A stretch of 64,000 bases of DNA from Bacillus subtilis subsp. subtilis str. 168 (GCF_000009045.1 NC_000964.3:1860001-1924000), one strand, 5' to 3'; counted from the first letter of the stretch, positions 1,384-58,723 are shown. Program-made: numbers and translations. Notes: generated by a model not told the origin, from the letters alone.

Positions 1384-2712
1384 TTATTGGCCGGGAACGG
1401 AATTTTCTGCGTTGACAGCGCCCGCTCCGTAGATATTCGGATCTTCATCTTTCCATTTGTCCGTGCCGTTTTTCAAAAGCTCTTTTACTTCATCAGGGGT
1501 AAGATCCGGGTTTTGCTGAAGAATTAAAGCTGCGATTCCTGCGCAAATCGGTGTTGCCATCGAGGTTCCTGACATTGTAAAGTACTGAGACCCTACACGG
1601 CTTGACTTTTGGAGCTTATCAATATAAGAATTCGGAGAGCGAAGGGAAATAATATTAACACCCGGCGCTAAAATATCGGGCTTTTCTTTCCCGTATACTG
1701 TCGGGCCGCGGCTTGAGAAGGAAGCGACAGTATCATCATCGCTGCTTGCAGTATTGTTATCGTCAAGCGCACCTACTGTAATCACCTTTTCGCTCACGCC
1801 CGGGCTTGCAATGGTCTGCGAATCAGGGCCTGAGTTTCCGGCAGCGACACAGACGACAATCCCTGCGCTCCACGCTTCCTCAACCGCTCTGACTAACGGA
1901 TCTTCCTGTTCATGATCATATCTAAGGGCATCGCCCCCGAGCGACATGCTCATAATATCAATCGGTTCATCGGGGTTGTCCTCATTGTATTGAATACACC
2001 ACTCAACACCCTCTATAATATCTGCTAACGTTCCTGAACCCTGCTTGTTTAATACCTTTACGCCGATGAGATTGGCTTCCGGTGCAGGTCCGCGGTATTG
2101 ACCGGAAGAGGATGCACCGCTGCTTGCGACATCACCTGCACAGTGTGTGCCATGACCATTATCATCGTACGGCTCTGTTTTTTGATTGACCATGTCCGCG
2201 AATCCGATAATTCTTCCTTCTAGATCAGGATGCGGGTAGATTCCTGTATCGACAACAGCGACAGTAACACCTTTTCCTGTCAGGGTTTGCCCGTTTCTGA
2301 CGACTTCCTTCGCATGGCTTGCTTCGGTTGCCGTGTCTAAAAGCGCTTTGACTTCGCGGTTTAAATACACTTTACGGATATTGCTGCATTCAGAGAGAAG
2401 GGAATGTAATGCTGAAGGAGTAACCTCGGCGCTGCAGCAGTTGATTTTGTTGAAGCGGCTTTTTAGCTTGCTGCGTTTTTCTTTTTGCAGCACCTCTCCA
2501 GCCATTTGAAAGCCGGTCTCGTGACAGCCTTCCTCAAATTCGATAATGACTGACATTTTTTTTCTGTTTTGCAATTTGGTTTCGAAAAATTTATGCAAGA
2601 AGCAAGGAGTCCATTTGAAGGGCTTGTAAAGTTGCAATACGGTTTCCCGTAACGGCCAATCTAGCTTGTGAGCATTTGCTCTCACCATTTGTACCATAGA
2701 GTACCCAAACAT
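1384..2712 (-). CDS. aprX: Intracellular subtilisin-family (S8) serine protease AprX
   Basis: Catalytic motifs VVDTG, NGHGTHCAG and SGTSMATP. Confidence 0.97.
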   Translation of the reverse strand: MFGYSMVQMVRANAHKLDWPLRETVLQLYKPFKWTPCFLHKFFETKLQNRKKMSVIIEFEEGCHETGFQMAGEVLQKEKRSKLKSRFNKINCCSAEVTPSALHSLLSECSNIRKVYLNREVKALLDTATEASHAKEVVRNGQTLTGKGVTVAVVDTGIYPHPDLEGRIIGFADMVNQKTEPYDDNGHGTHCAGDVASSGASSSGQYRGPAPEANLIGVKVLNKQGSGTLADIIEGVEWCIQYNEDNPDEPIDIMSMSLGGDALRYDHEQEDPLVRAVEEAWSAGIVVCVAAGNSGPDSQTIASPGVSEKVITVGALDDNNTASSDDDTVASFSSRGPTVYGKEKPDILAPGVNIISLRSPNSYIDKLQKSSRVGSQYFTMSGTSMATPICAGIAALILQQNPDLTPDEVKELLKNGTDKWKDEDPNIYGAGAVNAENSVPGQ

Positions 2713-2870
2713 GTATTTTCCTCCTATTATAAGGTTCTCTGTATACTCTATGAACAGATGATAGGTTTGGTAAGTTTGTTTGTCCTCTGTAAGAGACAGA
2801 CAAGAGTTTGTTTTTCTGAATCTTTCGCATTAGATACGATAGATTCAGAAGCTGAGGAAATCATTGGGGA

Positions 2871-2900
2871 TTGAAAAAGAACGTTTGTTCGTATTATAAT
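2871..2900 (+). promoter_or_regulatory. SigA promoter with a LexA (SOS) box between -35 and -10
   Basis: TTGAAA (2871-2876), AGAACGTTTGTTCG (2878-2891), TATAAT (2895-2900). Confidence 0.8.
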
Positions 2901-2936
2901 GTGATCATATCAAACTGGGAAGGGGAGAGCAACCGT

Positions 2937-3168
2937 ATGAATTTCTACTTGCACCGATCTTTGGAAAGCCAAATGCCAATCAGCATTATATATGAAGAAA
3001 GACGGAACGATTAGTAAAAGAACGATTATTGTGAGACAGAAAAGCAAAACGAAAATCAAAGCATTTTGTTTTTCGAAACAACAGATCAGAACATTTTTAT
3101 TGGACTCTATCCTCTCCTGTGATTTTGTGAGAACAAATAAGCAAAATCTCTATTCTGCAGGCCGGTAA
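2937..3168 (+). pseudogene. Frameshifted small WYL-like protein (about 77 aa if repaired)
   Basis: RBS plus ATG 2937 stops at 3014. The +1 frame continues MKKDGTISKRTIIV...IKAFCFSKQQIRTFLLDSILS to TAA 3168. The break lies in an AT dinucleotide run. Confidence 0.75.
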
Positions 3169-3447
3169 CAGCTGTCCGTCTCAGCAACCGGGCAGCCTGT
3201 TACTAAAACCCTCCTTAAACCTATATACATTTATTTGCCAAGTGAGGTTGTTCCTACCTTTTTTGTCTTTCCTCTCAACCTTTTTTCACTCTTATTTGAA
3301 ATGAACCGCTAATAACCGTGACAATCAATTGATTTTTTGAAACCGGGAACTTTTTCACTGATGATATTGTGTATACAATGGTAAGATAAAACCTATTGGC
3401 TAAACCTCATATAATGAACCGCGCCATTCTTATGAAAGGAGTTAAAC

Positions 3448-4155
3448 ATGAGAAGATTTTTACTAAATGTCATATTAGTCTTAGCCATTGTCTTGTTCTT
3501 GAGATATGTTCATTACTCATTGGAACCAGAACCATCAAATCAGCCAGATACATATTCAAATTTCAGCAGCTTGGCAGAGAATGAGAGCCCAGCCGATTAC
3601 GATATTTCATATAATGAGAAAAAAGGAAGCAAAGTCTTAATTATGTCTCCGCATGGCGGAAGAATTGAAGGCGGAGTAAGTGAGCTTGTGCGTTATTTCA
3701 ATAATGAATACTCTACATACCTATTTGAAGGGTTGAAGTCCCATGATAACCAAACACTGCACATTACAAGCACCAACTTTGATGAGCCATTGGCAAAAAA
3801 GAAAATCAAGGAGCATCAATATGTGGTGGCTTTTCACGGATATAAAGGAGAGAACAAGAATACCCTTGTAGGGGGAACAGACCGAAAGCGGGCGAAAATG
3901 ATTGTGAGAGCCCTTGAGCGGAGAGGGTTTTCCGCTGAGTTAGCGTCGTCTAAAAGCGGTCTTGCTGGATTGAATGCCGAAAACATTAATAACCAAGGGG
4001 AAACGGGGCTAAGTATCCAGCTGGAAATCAGCCGTGAGCAGAGAGAAGCATTTTTTGATGATTTTTATTATAAAAATAGAAAATACACAAAGAACAGTGA
4101 ATTTTATGCTTATGTCAGTGCGATCAAAGGTGTCCTGGAAAAAGAGTATTCGTAA
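3448..4155 (+). CDS. ymaC: Phage-related poly-gamma-glutamate hydrolase (PghP-like)
   Basis: N-terminal membrane anchor; PHGGRIEGG, LHITSTNFDEP and FHG motifs; paralog of the 55221 gene. Confidence 0.88.
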   Translation: MRRFLLNVILVLAIVLFLRYVHYSLEPEPSNQPDTYSNFSSLAENESPADYDISYNEKKGSKVLIMSPHGGRIEGGVSELVRYFNNEYSTYLFEGLKSHDNQTLHITSTNFDEPLAKKKIKEHQYVVAFHGYKGENKNTLVGGTDRKRAKMIVRALERRGFSAELASSKSGLAGLNAENINNQGETGLSIQLEISREQREAFFDDFYYKNRKYTKNSEFYAYVSAIKGVLEKEYS

Positions 4156-30511: not shown

Positions 30512-31666
30512 TTACATTGTAATCATGTCCAGAAAATGATCAATCACAATGGAGGACATTCCTAATGCCGGTGCATTCTGTCCTAAGGAAGATGGCAATA
30601 ATTCATAGCTATTGCCTAATTGGGAATAAACCCTTGATGATACTTCACTTCTCATTGAATTTAAAACCATAGGATGCGATTCAATTATGCTATTTCTTAA
30701 AATTACGGCTTGTGGGTTGAAAGTATTTAGAATATTGGTAAGGCCTATTCCTAAATAGAATCCAAAATTTTGTAATGCATTTAAGGTTCCGATATCATTC
30801 AGATGGGCGAGGTTTATGATATCTTGATAGGACAGTTTTTTCTCTTTGGTCTGAAGAGATTTTAATAAAGCCTTCTCTGAAGCATACAATTCCCAGCATC
30901 CTCGGTTTCCGCAACTGCATTTAGGACCATTAAAGTCTATTGTCATATGTCCCATTTCTCCAGAGAAGCCGCTTACTCCTCTATATAAATGATTGTTGAT
31001 AATAACACCGATCCCTATTCCTGTGCTGATACTTACGTAAATAATGTTATCGTGATTTTTTGCAGCTCCAAATACTTTTTCTCCATATGCGCCAGCATTT
31101 GCCTCATTTTCAATAAAAACAGGCACATTGTACTTCTCTTGTATCGAAGATTTTAAGTCAATATCTCTCCAGTTGGAGTTCGGAGTGAAAACAATTTTTT
31201 GATCTTTATCAATGAGTCCAGGCACGCAAATACCTATACCAATAAGCCCGTACGGAGATTGGGGCATTTGCGTAATAAAGTGATGAATCATATCAATCAA
31301 AATGTCTTTCGTTATTTCTGGAGAATTGGATTCCAAATGGCGGTATTGATCAAGAACGATTGTTCCTTCAAGGTCTGTTAAAATGCCATTAATATAATCC
31401 ACACCAACATCTATTCCAACGGAGTATCCTGCCTTTTTATTAAAAACAAGCATGACAGGTCTTCTTCCGCCACTTGATTGTCCTTGACCTATTTCAAATA
31501 CCATACTTTCTTTCATTAACGTGTTTACCTGTGATGAGACAGTTGATTTATTTAATCCAGTCATTTCAGATAATTTTGCTCTTGAAATAGGTGAATTTTT
31601 AAGGATTTCTTTTAATAATAACTTTTGATTTACTTTTTTGACAAAGGTTTGATCAGCGATATCCAC
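30512..31666 (-). CDS. xylR: ROK-family xylose repressor
   Basis: N-terminal HTH; ENEAN; GEMGH..CSCGNRGCWE; GTG start. Confidence 0.96.
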   Translation of the reverse strand: MDIADQTFVKKVNQKLLLKEILKNSPISRAKLSEMTGLNKSTVSSQVNTLMKESMVFEIGQGQSSGGRRPVMLVFNKKAGYSVGIDVGVDYINGILTDLEGTIVLDQYRHLESNSPEITKDILIDMIHHFITQMPQSPYGLIGIGICVPGLIDKDQKIVFTPNSNWRDIDLKSSIQEKYNVPVFIENEANAGAYGEKVFGAAKNHDNIIYVSISTGIGIGVIINNHLYRGVSGFSGEMGHMTIDFNGPKCSCGNRGCWELYASEKALLKSLQTKEKKLSYQDIINLAHLNDIGTLNALQNFGFYLGIGLTNILNTFNPQAVILRNSIIESHPMVLNSMRSEVSSRVYSQLGNSYELLPSSLGQNAPALGMSSIVIDHFLDMITM

Positions 31667-43510: not shown

Positions 43511-44263
43511 TTATTTATTAACAGAGATCGTAACGTTATTTCCTGCAACTGAAACCTTTGCGAAATCCTGTGTATCTACCACAGGAGTGACGGCTTTATT
43601 GTCGATAGTGATGTTGTTAAAAGAGGTCGAAAAGGTTGCTTTGATCGCATCACGCTGGCTTTCATACGAAACAGCCGCGGTAGCAAGTGTTTTCCATTTT
43701 GAAATCGTGCCGATGTTGGTTCCTTGAATTTCTGTGATAATCCGTCCGGTGTAGCCGTCATTGTTCGTTCCCCAAAGGGTCATGCGCGTATTGCCGCTTA
43801 AATTTTTATAGATTGTCATTTGGACTGTGCTTCCAGGGCGGAAGCCTTTATTGTATGTGAATTTGTCTTTTCCTTCGATGTACGTTTCTTCATTTTTGGA
43901 CCCAACCTTCATGAGGGGCTTCCAGACGTTGTATTGTTTGCTGTACTGAAGCCCGATATCGGCTTCAGTTCCGCTTGTTGCCCTAAAGCCAGAATAAATA
44001 TAGGGAGTAGAGACCGAGTCGTTGTTTTTGACAGTTTCAGGAAGCACGATTTTAGCTGTAAAAACGGCGCCCGTACTGTTCAGGTAGACACGGCCGCCGA
44101 TTCCGTTAGGCAGCTCGGATGCTGCTTTTGCGACTTGAGCGTCTGCCGCGGGTAAACCTGGTATACCTGATGAAAGGGTTCCGAAAAGAACTGCTGTTCC
44201 TACTGCACCTGCAATCAATACTTTTTTCACCAAAATTCCCCCTTTTGATAGTGGTTTCGCCAT
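43511..44263 (-). CDS. yncM: Secreted YrpD/YncM-family protein
   Basis: Signal peptide; [15 protein letters not shown]; true start may be GTG 44230 after AAGGGGG. Confidence 0.8.
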
Positions 44264-47493: not shown

Positions 47494-49056
47494 ATGATGA
47501 GGTGGCGGAACAATCAGTACAAAACACAGAAGCAGCATAAATCAGATTATTCGACAGCTGAAAAGCAGGATCAGGATGTGTTAACCGGTAACATCGGATA
47601 CGACTTAGAACATGTAAAAAGAAAAATAGGACATAACGGGGACGTTCATTTCCGTGAGCTTGAAATCACTCAATTACATGTGAAAGCGGCATTGATCTTT
47701 GTTGAAGGACTGTCTGATCAGGACTTGATTAATAAAGGACTATCAGTGTTAGTCATGAATCAACCTAATCAGGTAAGCGATGAAATTTCTCAATCCGGCA
47801 AAGGTATTTTAACTTCGAAACAGATAAAAAATCAAATCGTATCAATCGGTGATGTCATAGATTCAGAGAAAATCAGTGATATCGTGTTGAATGTTTTCAT
47901 GGGTTCGACAGCGCTTCTCATCGATGGAATACCGCAGGCCTTTCTTCTGGGAACTGTAAAAAAACAAAATCGAAGTATCGAGGAGCCGCTTTCAGAAGCG
48001 CTTGTCAGAGGGCCGCGCACAGGCTTTACAGAAGAGTTGAGTACGAATACAGCTCTTTTGAGACAGCAAGGAAAAAATGATCAATTAACATTGCAGAGAT
48101 TTGAAGTAGGAACACGATTAAAAAAGGATTTAATTATCGCTTATATGAATGACATTGCAGATCCAAAAGTAGTCGAGGAAGTAAGAAAAAGAGTGAGAGG
48201 GATTGAGATCGATCATTTGCCGGAGTCAGGCTACGTTGAACAGTTAATTGAGGATAATTATTTGAGCCCGTTCCCGCAAGTACAGAGTACAGAACGTCCT
48301 GATCGCGTCATAAGCGGATTAATGGAAGGAAGAGTAGCTATTCTGCTTGACGGCACTCCGTTTGCTTTGATTGTTCCAGTCACTTTCAGCATGATGCTTC
48401 AATCGCCTGAAGATTATTATGAACGGTGGTTCCCGAGCTCGCTCATCAGATTGCTGAGGTTCATCGCAGCAATGATAACGTTATTCGCACCCGCTTTATA
48501 TATATCATTTATTTCTTTTCATCCTGGGTTAATTCCGACCAAGCTGGCGATTTCAATTTCCGGGACGCGCCAAGGTGTTCCGTTCCCATCTCTGATTGAA
48601 GCCTTATTTATGGAAGTCGCGATTGAAATTTTAAGAGAGGCGGGGCTTCGTTTGCCAAAACCAATTGGACCCGCAATAGGCATAGTTGGCGGATTAATCA
48701 TCGGGGAAGCAGCTGTGCAGGCGGGGATTGTCAGTCCAATCATGGTCATTGTTGTTGCGCTCACAGCAATTTCTTCATTTGCCATCCCGCATTATAGCAC
48801 AGGTATAGCACTTCGGATGCTTCGGTTTGGCGCGATGTTTTGTGCGGCGGTGTTTGGATTGTTTGGAGTCATTATGTATTATCTGCTGCTAAGCAGCCAT
48901 GTCGTAAAGCTAAAGAGCTTTGGTGTGCCATACGCAAGTCCGGCAGTGCCCTATCACTTAAAAGATTGGAAAGACTTTGTTATCAGAATGCCTCTTTTAG
49001 TCATGAAGCGCCGGCCTAAAATGATGAATACAGATAATACAAAACGGGTGAAGTGA
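47494..49056 (+). CDS. yndD: GerA-family germinant receptor A subunit
   Basis: EEP.SE..VRGPR.GF, TERPD and EILREAG.RLP. Confidence 0.93.
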
Positions 49057-57638: not shown

Positions 57639-58256
57639 TTAATGGACGGTTCTGAACACGCCAATCACTTTCCCTAGAATGCTGACATTCTGCAAAATGA
57701 TAGGTTCCATCGTTGGGTTCTCAGGCTGCAAGCGAATGTGGGTATCCTCTTTATAGAATCGTTTTACAGTTGCTTCATCATCTTCTGTCATCGCAACTAC
57801 AATTTCCCCATTGTTCGCTGTGTTTTGCTGTTTAACGATGACATAGTCCTTATCGAGAATACCAGCATCTATCATACTGTCTCCCATAATCTCCAGCATA
57901 AATACATGCTCGTCTGGAGGAACCATGCGGTCAGGGAGCGGAAAATATTCTTCAATATTTTCTACTGCTGTAATAGGAGATCCCGCCGTGACTTTCCCGA
58001 TGACCGGTACATTAACGACCTGGCTTTGCGGAATGTCTACTTCTTCATCAAGAATTTCTATTGCTCTTGGTTTTGTCGGATCTCGTCTGATCAGCCCTTT
58101 TGTTTCCAAACGGGCCAAATGGCCGTGGACAGTAGAACTGGACGCAAGCCCGACAGCCTCTCCGATCTCTCTCACGGAAGGCGGATATCCTTTTGATTTA
58201 ACCTCTGCTTTAATAAAACGGAGGATATCAAGTTGCCTTTTTGATAGCTTCGTCAT
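57639..58256 (-). CDS. lexA: SOS repressor LexA
   Basis: [14 protein letters not shown] cleavage site, GDSM and VKR. Confidence 0.98.
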
Positions 58257-58314
58257 TTTTCGCACCTCAAAACGTCGATTTTAAGAAGATTATAGCATGA
58301 TTTTCCTTACAGTA

Positions 58315-58394
58315 CAAACATAGGTTCGAAAAAACAATTGACAGAAACGTTTGTTCGTATATACTGAAATTATAAAAATGCGAACAAACATTCC
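58315..58394. promoter_or_regulatory. Three SOS boxes and the divergent lexA/yneA promoters
   Basis: CAAACATAGGTTCG (58315), GAAACGTTTGTTCG (58344), CGAACAAACATTCC (58381); TTGACA at 58338. Confidence 0.9.
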
Positions 58395-58405
58395 TGTTGG
58401 AGGTT

Positions 58406-58723
58406 ATGATCATGAGTAAAGAATCTATTATTTTTGTCGGTCTGTTTACAGTGATTTTGAGCGCGGTTATCCTTATGCTGTCATATACAAGCAGCGGCCA
58501 AGAGCTTAATCAGTATGTTAAAATAGAAGTCCAGCAAGGCGACACACTCTGGTCAATTGCTGATCAGGTAGCCGATACAAAAAAGATAAACAAAAATGAT
58601 TTTATTGAATGGGTAGCTGATAAAAATCAACTTCAAACCTCTGATATCCAGCCGGGTGATGAGTTAGTGATCCCATTGAAAAAGAAGCATCAGGATGCAT
58701 ATGAATTAGCAACTGTAAGATAG
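58406..58723 (+). CDS. yneA: SOS cell-division inhibitor YneA
   Basis: TM segment plus LysM domain (VQQGDTLWSIA). Confidence 0.93.
   Translation: MIMSKESIIFVGLFTVILSAVILMLSYTSSGQELNQYVKIEVQQGDTLWSIADQVADTKKINKNDFIEWVADKNQLQTSDIQPGDELVIPLKKKHQDAYELATVR

Follow-up and report, generated by a model that had tools for sequence, protein, structure and literature searches.

In Bacillus subtilis subsp. subtilis str. 168, the interval between the divergently oriented genes aprX and ymaC holds a small gene-like segment at positions 2871-3168 of the DNA analysed here, a stretch of 64,000 nucleotides (nt; GCF_000009045.1, NC_000964.3:1860001-1924000), hereafter the window. The segment consists of a promoter with a LexA box between its two hexamers, a ribosome-binding site (RBS) and an open reading frame (ORF) split in two, all of which had been described in a first-pass annotation and all of which we find at the same positions. 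We read the region as the 168-lineage allele of a small SOS-regulon gene for a WYL-domain protein, broken by the loss of one TA, with the operator belonging to the WYL gene, and we give this reading a probability of about 80%. Its parts are as follows.

2871-2876, plus strand: -35 hexamer TTGAAA of the small WYL gene promoter, invariant in 10 B. subtilis-complex sequences.
2878-2891, strand-neutral: LexA operator (Cheo box) AGAACGTTTGTTCG within the spacer between -35 and -10, a pattern match whose GAAC and GTTC half-sites are invariant in 9 species.
2895-2900, plus strand: -10 hexamer TATAAT, from the promoter scan and cross-species conservation.
2920-2927, plus strand: Shine-Dalgarno sequence AAGGGGAG, 9 nt ahead of the ATG at 2937.
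2937-3014, plus strand: ORF piece 1, 25 amino acids (aa), whose codons 1-19 give the native N-terminus MNFYLHRSLESQMPISIIY, matching residues 1-19 of the intact protein P0016.
2987-2993, strand-neutral: (TA)3T tract, the site of the 2-nt loss, which reads (TA)4T in intact alleles.
2992-3168, plus strand: ORF piece 2, 58 aa, starting with the ATG at 2992 and giving residues 20-77 of the intact protein.

The two hexamers, 18 nt apart, agree with the sigma-A consensus at 11 of 12 positions and make up the top promoter-like site on the plus strand in a scan of 2600-3500. Past codon 19, ORF piece 1 runs out of frame into the TAG at 3012-3014, and the entire barrel of the fold described below is missing from its 25-aa product. 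ORF piece 2 carries most of the WYL barrel without helix 1, strand 1 and the invariant Tyr19, and no Shine-Dalgarno sequence precedes its ATG.

A DNA alignment that sets the window beside eight intact B. subtilis loci shows it to be shorter by exactly 2 nt, one TA, the intact loci reading CATTATATATATG and the window CATTATATATG; three of the eight show no other difference from the window over 735 nt. It had been proposed that adding one AT unit fuses the two frames into a 77-aa protein, and the protein reconstructed in this way turns out to be a natural intact allele (P0016), carried by at least 1000 contigs, with 2821 index blocks in the collection. The broken allele, traced by its 58-aa piece, appears in the annotation of 15 contigs that stem from separate assemblies, a count that is a lower bound since many annotators leave pseudogene pieces uncalled. 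Two loci taken from these contigs, one of them from CP010052.1, match the window without any difference over 3177 nt.

Some sequencing chemistries tend to make errors in dinucleotide runs, and the gap could in principle be an assembly or sequencing error in the reference. That explanation is scarcely credible given the recurrence of the same allele on 15 contigs of separate origin and the two fetched loci identical to the window. The locus is, we believe, annotated in strain 168 as the split pseudogene ymzE/1-ymzE/2. A "ymzE/2, pseudogene" is named in the literature, where it is up 3.9-fold in competent cells (PMC7317962), which likewise speaks against an error in the sequence. If the name does denote this locus, the rise fits the recA-linked induction of the competent state. 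Another paper places ymzE beside hfq (an "hfq-ymzE" intergenic region; PMC4410918); hfq lies several genes downstream, so that this is probably a naming slip, and the statement is not used here.

The lesion amounts to exactly one dinucleotide repeat unit, the signature of replication slippage, and the first-pass annotation had accordingly offered two possibilities, a gene inactivated or a gene switchable by slippage. Under the second, this would be a phase-variable contingency gene whose run slips often and toggles between ON and OFF, the window showing the OFF state. Simple-sequence contingency loci have a long tract that varies in length among close relatives, but the run found here has merely three to four units, (TA)3 in the window and (TA)4 elsewhere. 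All 17 intact loci of the B. subtilis complex carry (TA)4, eight from B. subtilis and nine from other species (B. stercoris, B. rugosus, B. inaquosorum, two strains of B. spizizenii, B. halotolerans, B. mojavensis and Bacillus sp. N13C7, the last with a point substitution beside the run), as do three of three metagenome contigs retrieved with a pattern permitting any tract length. The (TA)3 form is confined to contigs identical to the window. Comparison of the run across B. subtilis isolates, which had been suggested as a check, thus returns no length variation beyond those contigs and speaks against slippage switching. Damaged alleles found elsewhere also differ from one another and lie outside repeats, as expected of sporadic decay: P0014 (61 aa) has a frameshift further downstream, P0006 an in-frame loss of two codons, and P0013 is a truncated form from B. 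tequilensis. A phase switch is therefore very improbable to us. Because the run is this short and shows no length polymorphism outside one lineage, the window copy is best taken, on this comparison, as a one-off slippage deletion that is now a fixed pseudogene of its lineage; of the two possibilities, inactivation stands and switching does not.

P0039 is a further damaged allele among the independent lesions in other strains and species. Taken together, the independent lesions of the WYL gene (P0014, P0006, P0013 and P0039) suggest that it is dispensable under some conditions.

Where it is intact, the gene appears to be maintained. Pairwise comparisons among nine species give ratios of nonsynonymous to synonymous divergence (dN/dS) of 0.07-0.25 at dS values of up to 0.9, which indicates purifying selection in the B. 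subtilis complex, and across the same nine species the -35 hexamer, both operator half-sites and the -10 hexamer remain constant amid diverging flanks. In B. velezensis a 77-aa orthologue occupies the syntenic position between aprX and ymaC. By these comparisons an intact gene is present in further B. subtilis strains, in the remaining members of the B. subtilis complex and in B. velezensis, and the intact homologues in other Bacillus genomes on which the original proposal had been staked are abundant.

Searched separately against Pfam, the 58-aa piece stayed below threshold (WYL, expectation value (E) 0.18) and the 25-aa piece gave no match, so that the fold assignment had to rest on natural intact homologues. 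A profile search of 1.84 billion representatives returned at least 232 clusters at E <= 1e-3, nearly all of them 60-100 aa long and aligned from end to end. PF13280, the WYL model, is matched by 23 of 32 sampled family members (best E 7.3e-7). Compared with the Protein Data Bank (PDB), the family profile finds WYL domains at E values from 1.4e-8 to 0.07, namely the C-terminal 70 residues of chains 8bnv (E 1.4e-8) and 8bns (E 2e-6) and also CapW (7tb5), BrxR (7t8k) and PafBC. AlphaFold2 failed with a 12-sequence alignment (predicted local distance difference test score (pLDDT) 43) and gave a model with a pLDDT of 91.4 when supplied with 116 sequences, in which a helix (residues 2-11) precedes strands at 15-20, 26-36, 40-45, 50-55 and 59-64. 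The top 20 Foldseek matches of this model in the PDB are all WYL domains, including those of BrxR, CapW, PafBC and DriD, several of them solved with single-stranded DNA (ssDNA), with template-modelling (TM) scores of 0.65-0.77 normalised to the query and best root-mean-square deviations of 1.4-1.8 A; the superpositions on BrxR, CapW, PafBC and DriD give TM scores of 0.72-0.77. Model and matches thus agree on an N-terminal helix followed by a five-stranded barrel of the Sm/SH3-like kind, and the WYL/SH3-like resemblance recognised at first reading is supported at the level of family profile, model and structural neighbours.

In the 116-sequence alignment, Y19 and R29 (116/116) are invariant and R52 (113/116), F54 (115/116) and L60 nearly so; R29, R52 and F54 align with the R and RxF positions of the WYL domain in 8bnv. 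Neither a helix-turn-helix (HTH) nor a WCX domain shares the polypeptide, whose 77 aa are taken up by the WYL domain alone, and the intact protein is accordingly predicted to be a stand-alone WYL domain. NCBIfam holds no model for a WYL family of about 75 aa, members bear solely the database names "hypothetical" or "WYL domain-containing", and our literature search found no account of stand-alone WYL proteins that form a family with conserved LexA control and with linkage to LexA homologues that consist of the DNA-binding domain (DBD) only. The profile search thus appears to delineate an uncharacterised family of WYL-domain proteins of about 75 residues in Bacillaceae and their temperate phages. 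Ala or Ser is the last residue in just over half of the aligned proteins (60/116), and the endings ...YA and ...GA are frequent among these.

Which gene owns the LexA box depends also on what surrounds it, and the other features concerned are these.

1384-2712, minus strand: aprX, S8 serine protease, the divergent neighbour (Peptidase_S8, E 8.7e-62).
2726-2760, minus strand: aprX-proximal promoter-like motifs, TTCATA-17-TATAAT and AC-N17-CATAGAGTA, a pattern reading, at least 118 bp from the LexA box.
3164-3204, plus strand: conserved 15-bp stem-loop of the B. subtilis complex, directly past the stop codon, with no U-run after it.
3448-4155, plus strand: ymaC/pghC, phage-type poly-gamma-glutamate hydrolase, the downstream neighbour (PF05908, E 2.9e-72).
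57639-58265, minus strand: lexA, encoding the trans-acting repressor expected at the operator.
58397-58723, plus strand: yneA, which adjoins lexA and has the same operator design.

The operator AGAACGTTTGTTCG departs from CGAACN4GTTCG by a single mismatch at an outer position, its core being exact. Boxes with one mismatch are expected 1.15 times in 64 kb, and 32 of 100 shuffled sequences contain at least two, so that the occurrence is not significant alone; exact GAAC-N4-GTTC cores number four in the window against 0.79 expected, a count reached in none of 100 shuffles. The three other exact cores (31354-31365, 44188-44199 and 48421-48432) have no promoter-like context in the flanks examined. 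The significance of the box comes from its position in the promoter and its conservation rather than from a single occurrence: it overlaps the promoter in the manner of LexA-regulon operators, inside the -35/-10 spacer, and it is conserved together with the gene in orthologues and paralogues.

A close likeness is provided within the window by yneA, whose promoter has the same design and a near-identical operator (TTGACAgAAACGTTTGTTCGTATATA in yneA, TTGAAAaAGAACGTTTGTTCGTATTATAAT in the WYL gene), while its product is unrelated to the WYL protein. The lexA-yneA intergenic region contains CAAACATAGGTTCG at 58315-58328 in addition to the yneA promoter TTGACAgAAACGTTTGTTCGTATATA. YneA is reportedly a validated LexA target, said to have been described by Kawai et al. 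in 2003 as a LexA-repressed inhibitor of cell division. The whole segment 57639-59692 comprises lexA on the minus strand and yneA, yneB and a 77-aa ynzC-like ORF on the plus strand.

Family members keep the arrangement in quite different settings. B. velezensis retains both the WYL gene and the box; the WYL-family locus of B. pumilus/safensis reads TTGAAAAAGAACGTTTGTTCGTTTATAAT, and two metagenome loci have the same promoter design. The family promoter is TTGAAAyAGAACAAAAGTTCGTATAA in a prophage of the B. amyloliquefaciens group, TTGACGAAACAGAACGATTGTTCTATAAT in the B. thuringiensis phage BMBtp1, AAAACGTTTGTTCT in Domibacillus and AGAACGTATGTTCG in Jeotgalibacillus, and the Virgibacillus phage Mimir87 shows the same design with one core mismatch. 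All family loci examined carry an operator of LexA type between the two hexamers, its core exact or nearly so; only that of Metabacillus has a degenerate operator half-site. Conversely, aprX orthologues that have no WYL neighbour show no box at one mismatch or fewer, neither in B. paralicheniformis (222-nt intergenic region) nor in B. pumilus (576 nt). Because the family keeps the box in unrelated contexts that have no aprX in the vicinity, and aprX lacks it where the WYL gene is absent, the operator tracks the WYL gene and probably belongs to it and not, or at least less, to aprX. The suggestion that the box may control the small gene rather than aprX is in this way supported by sequence comparison.

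The neighbourhoods of family members, sampled in about 14 independent contexts, point to recurrent partners. The WYL gene overlaps a gene of 72-76 aa in two metagenome loci, in Domibacillus and in the B. amyloliquefaciens-group prophage, and the product of this gene is the LexA DNA-binding domain only, which matches PF01726 at E 1.2e-19 and is 35% identical to the N-terminal part of the window LexA. In B. nakamurai a 146-aa protein (P0199) has the WYL domain fused to such a LexA-DBD-only protein, the DBD being C-terminal, which may be a link of the Rosetta-stone type or else an artefact of annotation or of read-through where stop and start overlap. Accessions P0195 and P0197 are adjacent to the P0199 entry.

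The B. amyloliquefaciens-group prophage (L025-L028, 4001-6115) presents a LexA box followed by an operon of the WYL and LexA-DBD-only genes, and directly after this pair comes a 508-aa large serine recombinase with a box of its own, AGAACTGACGTTCG, an arrangement that hints at SOS-wired control of excision. The operon is situated at the prophage end, near holin/amidase, rap-phr and LXG toxin genes. A YolD-like gene comes directly after the WYL gene in phage BMBtp1 (E 1.5e-9) and in phage Mimir87 (E 9.2e-23). Divergent transcription of YolD-like, YhjD-like and Y-family polymerase genes is seen in Domibacillus and at one metagenome locus. Domibacillus enclensis (L034, 3169-5442 and 9511-10225) has two WYL/LexA-DBD-only pairs 5 kb apart. 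Each of these pairs is divergent from a weak YolD-like gene, one also with a Y-family polymerase (IMS/IMS_C), and a third WYL paralogue is found elsewhere in the genome.

Several observations weigh against our reading, on the side of the protein as on that of the operator. The intact B. subtilis protein scores only 15.5-17.9 bits with PF13280, 17.4 bits in the same search as the sampled members, under the gathering score of 21.8, so that the proposed search of the repaired protein against WYL models falls short for the protein itself and succeeds at the level of the family. With the two ORF pieces included, the scores span 12-18 bits. The position of the WYL triad is occupied not by W-Y-L but by A (104/116), Y or F (110/116) and C (114/116), the Cys, C45 in the B. 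subtilis numbering, being nearly invariant at the "L" position. The copies of the B. subtilis complex have no LexA-DBD, YolD or polymerase neighbour. As for the operator, a promoter-like site on the minus strand, TTCCCA-17-TATAAT from 2921 to 2893 (10 of 12 matches), overlaps the box, which might hence act in both directions. The place of aprX in the LexA regulon reportedly goes back to a 2005 SOS-regulon study. The published regulon lists aprX, described as SOS-induced, and not the WYL gene (PMC8767453).

The minus-strand site and the published listing speak for an operator of aprX, either with the overlap of the plus-strand promoter being secondary or with the box serving both divergent genes. 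We regard direct control of aprX through the box as a serious minority possibility. The -35 element of the minus-strand site, located within the RBS of the WYL gene, lacks cross-species conservation, whereas conserved promoter-like motifs stand immediately upstream of aprX, at 2726-2760, far from the box. Upstream of aprX in four species (the window, L031, L032 and L033) we find GTTCATAnnGTA, with AC 17 nt earlier. The motif could be a -10 element of the mother-cell sporulation type (CATAnnnTA), or else a sigma-A-like promoter TTCATA-17-TAnAAT that starts transcription inside the RBS. Conserved as they are, these motifs suggest that aprX has its own promoter away from the LexA box, and the missing box at aprX in B. 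paralicheniformis and B. pumilus, set beside its retention by WYL-family genes in every setting, also goes against an aprX operator. Assignment of the operator to the WYL gene is thus what we prefer.

Downstream of the gene, a terminator scan of 2600-3500 returned no terminator-like site and an Rfam search of the same interval no match. The stem-loop at 3164-3204 is a doubtful terminator, and transcription in B. subtilis may read through into ymaC-ymaD. B. velezensis has a canonical GC hairpin and T9 terminator at the equivalent position. The downstream neighbour ymaC (BSU17270) has been assigned to "prophage-like element 5" (PMC4497714).

With the operator assigned to the WYL gene, regulation of an intact allele can be pictured along known lines. 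LexA bound between the -35 and -10 hexamers would occlude RNA polymerase, and RecA-stimulated self-cleavage of LexA after DNA damage would free transcription. By analogy with the WYL domains of DriD, CapW, PafBC and Pif1, we infer that the small barrel binds single-stranded nucleic acid arising from the damage. The protein might then serve as a small modulator of the SOS and translesion machinery or of prophage switching. Because the gene in many relatives overlaps a LexA-DBD-only gene, is fused to it in the one B. nakamurai case or adjoins YolD-like and Y-family polymerase genes, the protein probably acts with a DNA-binding or polymerase partner.

A related possibility is that the protein is itself a YolD-like (UmuD-analogue) accessory subunit of Y-family translesion polymerases and not a sensor of nucleic acid. 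YolD belongs to the WYL-like SH3 superfamily and has been proposed as the Gram-positive counterpart of UmuD (PMC6511836), family members do adjoin YolD-like and Y-family polymerase genes, and one of the 32 sampled members weakly matches PF08863, the YolD-like model (E 0.0077). Yet the B. subtilis protein has no match to PF08863, and WYL is matched by 23 of the 32 members against that single one. The same loci contain a separate YolD-like gene, so that the small protein does not replace YolD; its structural neighbours are ligand-binding WYL domains, and the copy of the B. subtilis complex has no polymerase neighbour. On balance this identity seems improbable.

More speculatively, the proteins of about 75 aa could be SOS-induced ssDNA sensors, the detachable half of a split WYL regulator, which together with a LexA-DBD-only partner would form a non-cleavable, ssDNA-gated mimic of LexA. 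This proposal is one that we think rather unlikely. Such a mimic would reset SOS promoters or time the expression of the prophage recombinase and late genes, and solo copies such as that of B. subtilis would act directly on the host LexA or on the YolD/PolY mutasome. As a corollary, aprX would be no genuine LexA target, its published listing reflecting the promoter of the neighbouring mini-WYL gene.

For the window itself the result is modest: its copy being a pseudogene of a laboratory lineage, studies based on strain 168 would be blind to a small SOS gene. The published LexA operator would be reassigned from aprX to the divergent gene, which changes how statements about an SOS-induced protease are to be read. 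Beyond the window, the comparisons point to a widespread stand-alone WYL family that is repeatedly linked to LexA-DBD-only proteins, to YolD/Y-family polymerase operons and to a prophage recombinase. The Cheo-box promoter and the WYL fold are of known kinds; what appears to be new is the stand-alone WYL family, its conserved LexA control and its linkage to DBD-only LexA proteins. To our knowledge, WYL domains have so far been known as ssDNA sensors of LexA-independent damage responses, DriD and PafBC acting outside the LexA circuit. A minimal WYL module in the LexA regulon therefore suggests a link between two damage logics and possibly a new layer of control over SOS or prophage induction. 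With intact alleles present in undomesticated B. subtilis, the genetics should be easy to test.

Among known systems, the nearest in fold are DriD of Caulobacter, PafBC of actinobacteria, CapW and BrxR, with which the family shares the aligned conserved Arg, aromatic and hydrophobic positions. DriD, CapW and PafBC sense ssDNA (titles of their PDB entries; PMC9186387 and PMC10853764), and a link to DNA damage is common to these three and the WYL family. WYL transcription factors nevertheless differ in several respects: they are proteins of 270-660 aa with HTH-WYL-WCX architecture, as opposed to a bare domain of about 75 aa; they operate independently of LexA or in parallel to it, whereas the WYL family gene is predicted to be LexA-repressed; and the triad of the family reads A-[YF]-C, with a nearly invariant Cys. 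Where the family has a DNA-binding partner, this is moreover a separate, downstream winged helix of LexA type, so that compared with these factors the order is reversed and the parts are split.

The best profile match of all (E 1.4e-8, positions 4-65, the N-terminal helix included) is to 8bnv, which like 8bns is an "AAA family ATPase" chain of 510-517 aa. We take both to be thermophilic bacterial Pif1 helicases. In those chains the domain is appended to a helicase, whereas in the WYL family it is free-standing.

YolD, YqjX and YozL (PF08863), which the SOS response induces in Bacillus as partners of Y-family polymerases, form a distinct family. They are likewise small LexA-controlled SH3-like barrels belonging to the WYL-like superfamily (PMC6511836) and often occur in the same loci as the WYL family. 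They are longer, at about 100-135 aa against about 75 aa, and the relation between the two is one of co-occurrence, not substitution.

In phage GIL01, gp6 is a truncated, DBD-only LexA homologue that activates late genes, and gp7 is a small LexA co-repressor (PMC6182141). Many family members have as partner gene one for a DBD-only LexA homologue of this kind. GIL01 differs in that no WYL protein has been described there, gp7 is not reported to have a WYL fold, and the window locus has no DBD-only partner. It nonetheless offers a precedent, in Bacillus phages, both for DBD-only LexA proteins and for very small tuners of LexA-controlled switches.

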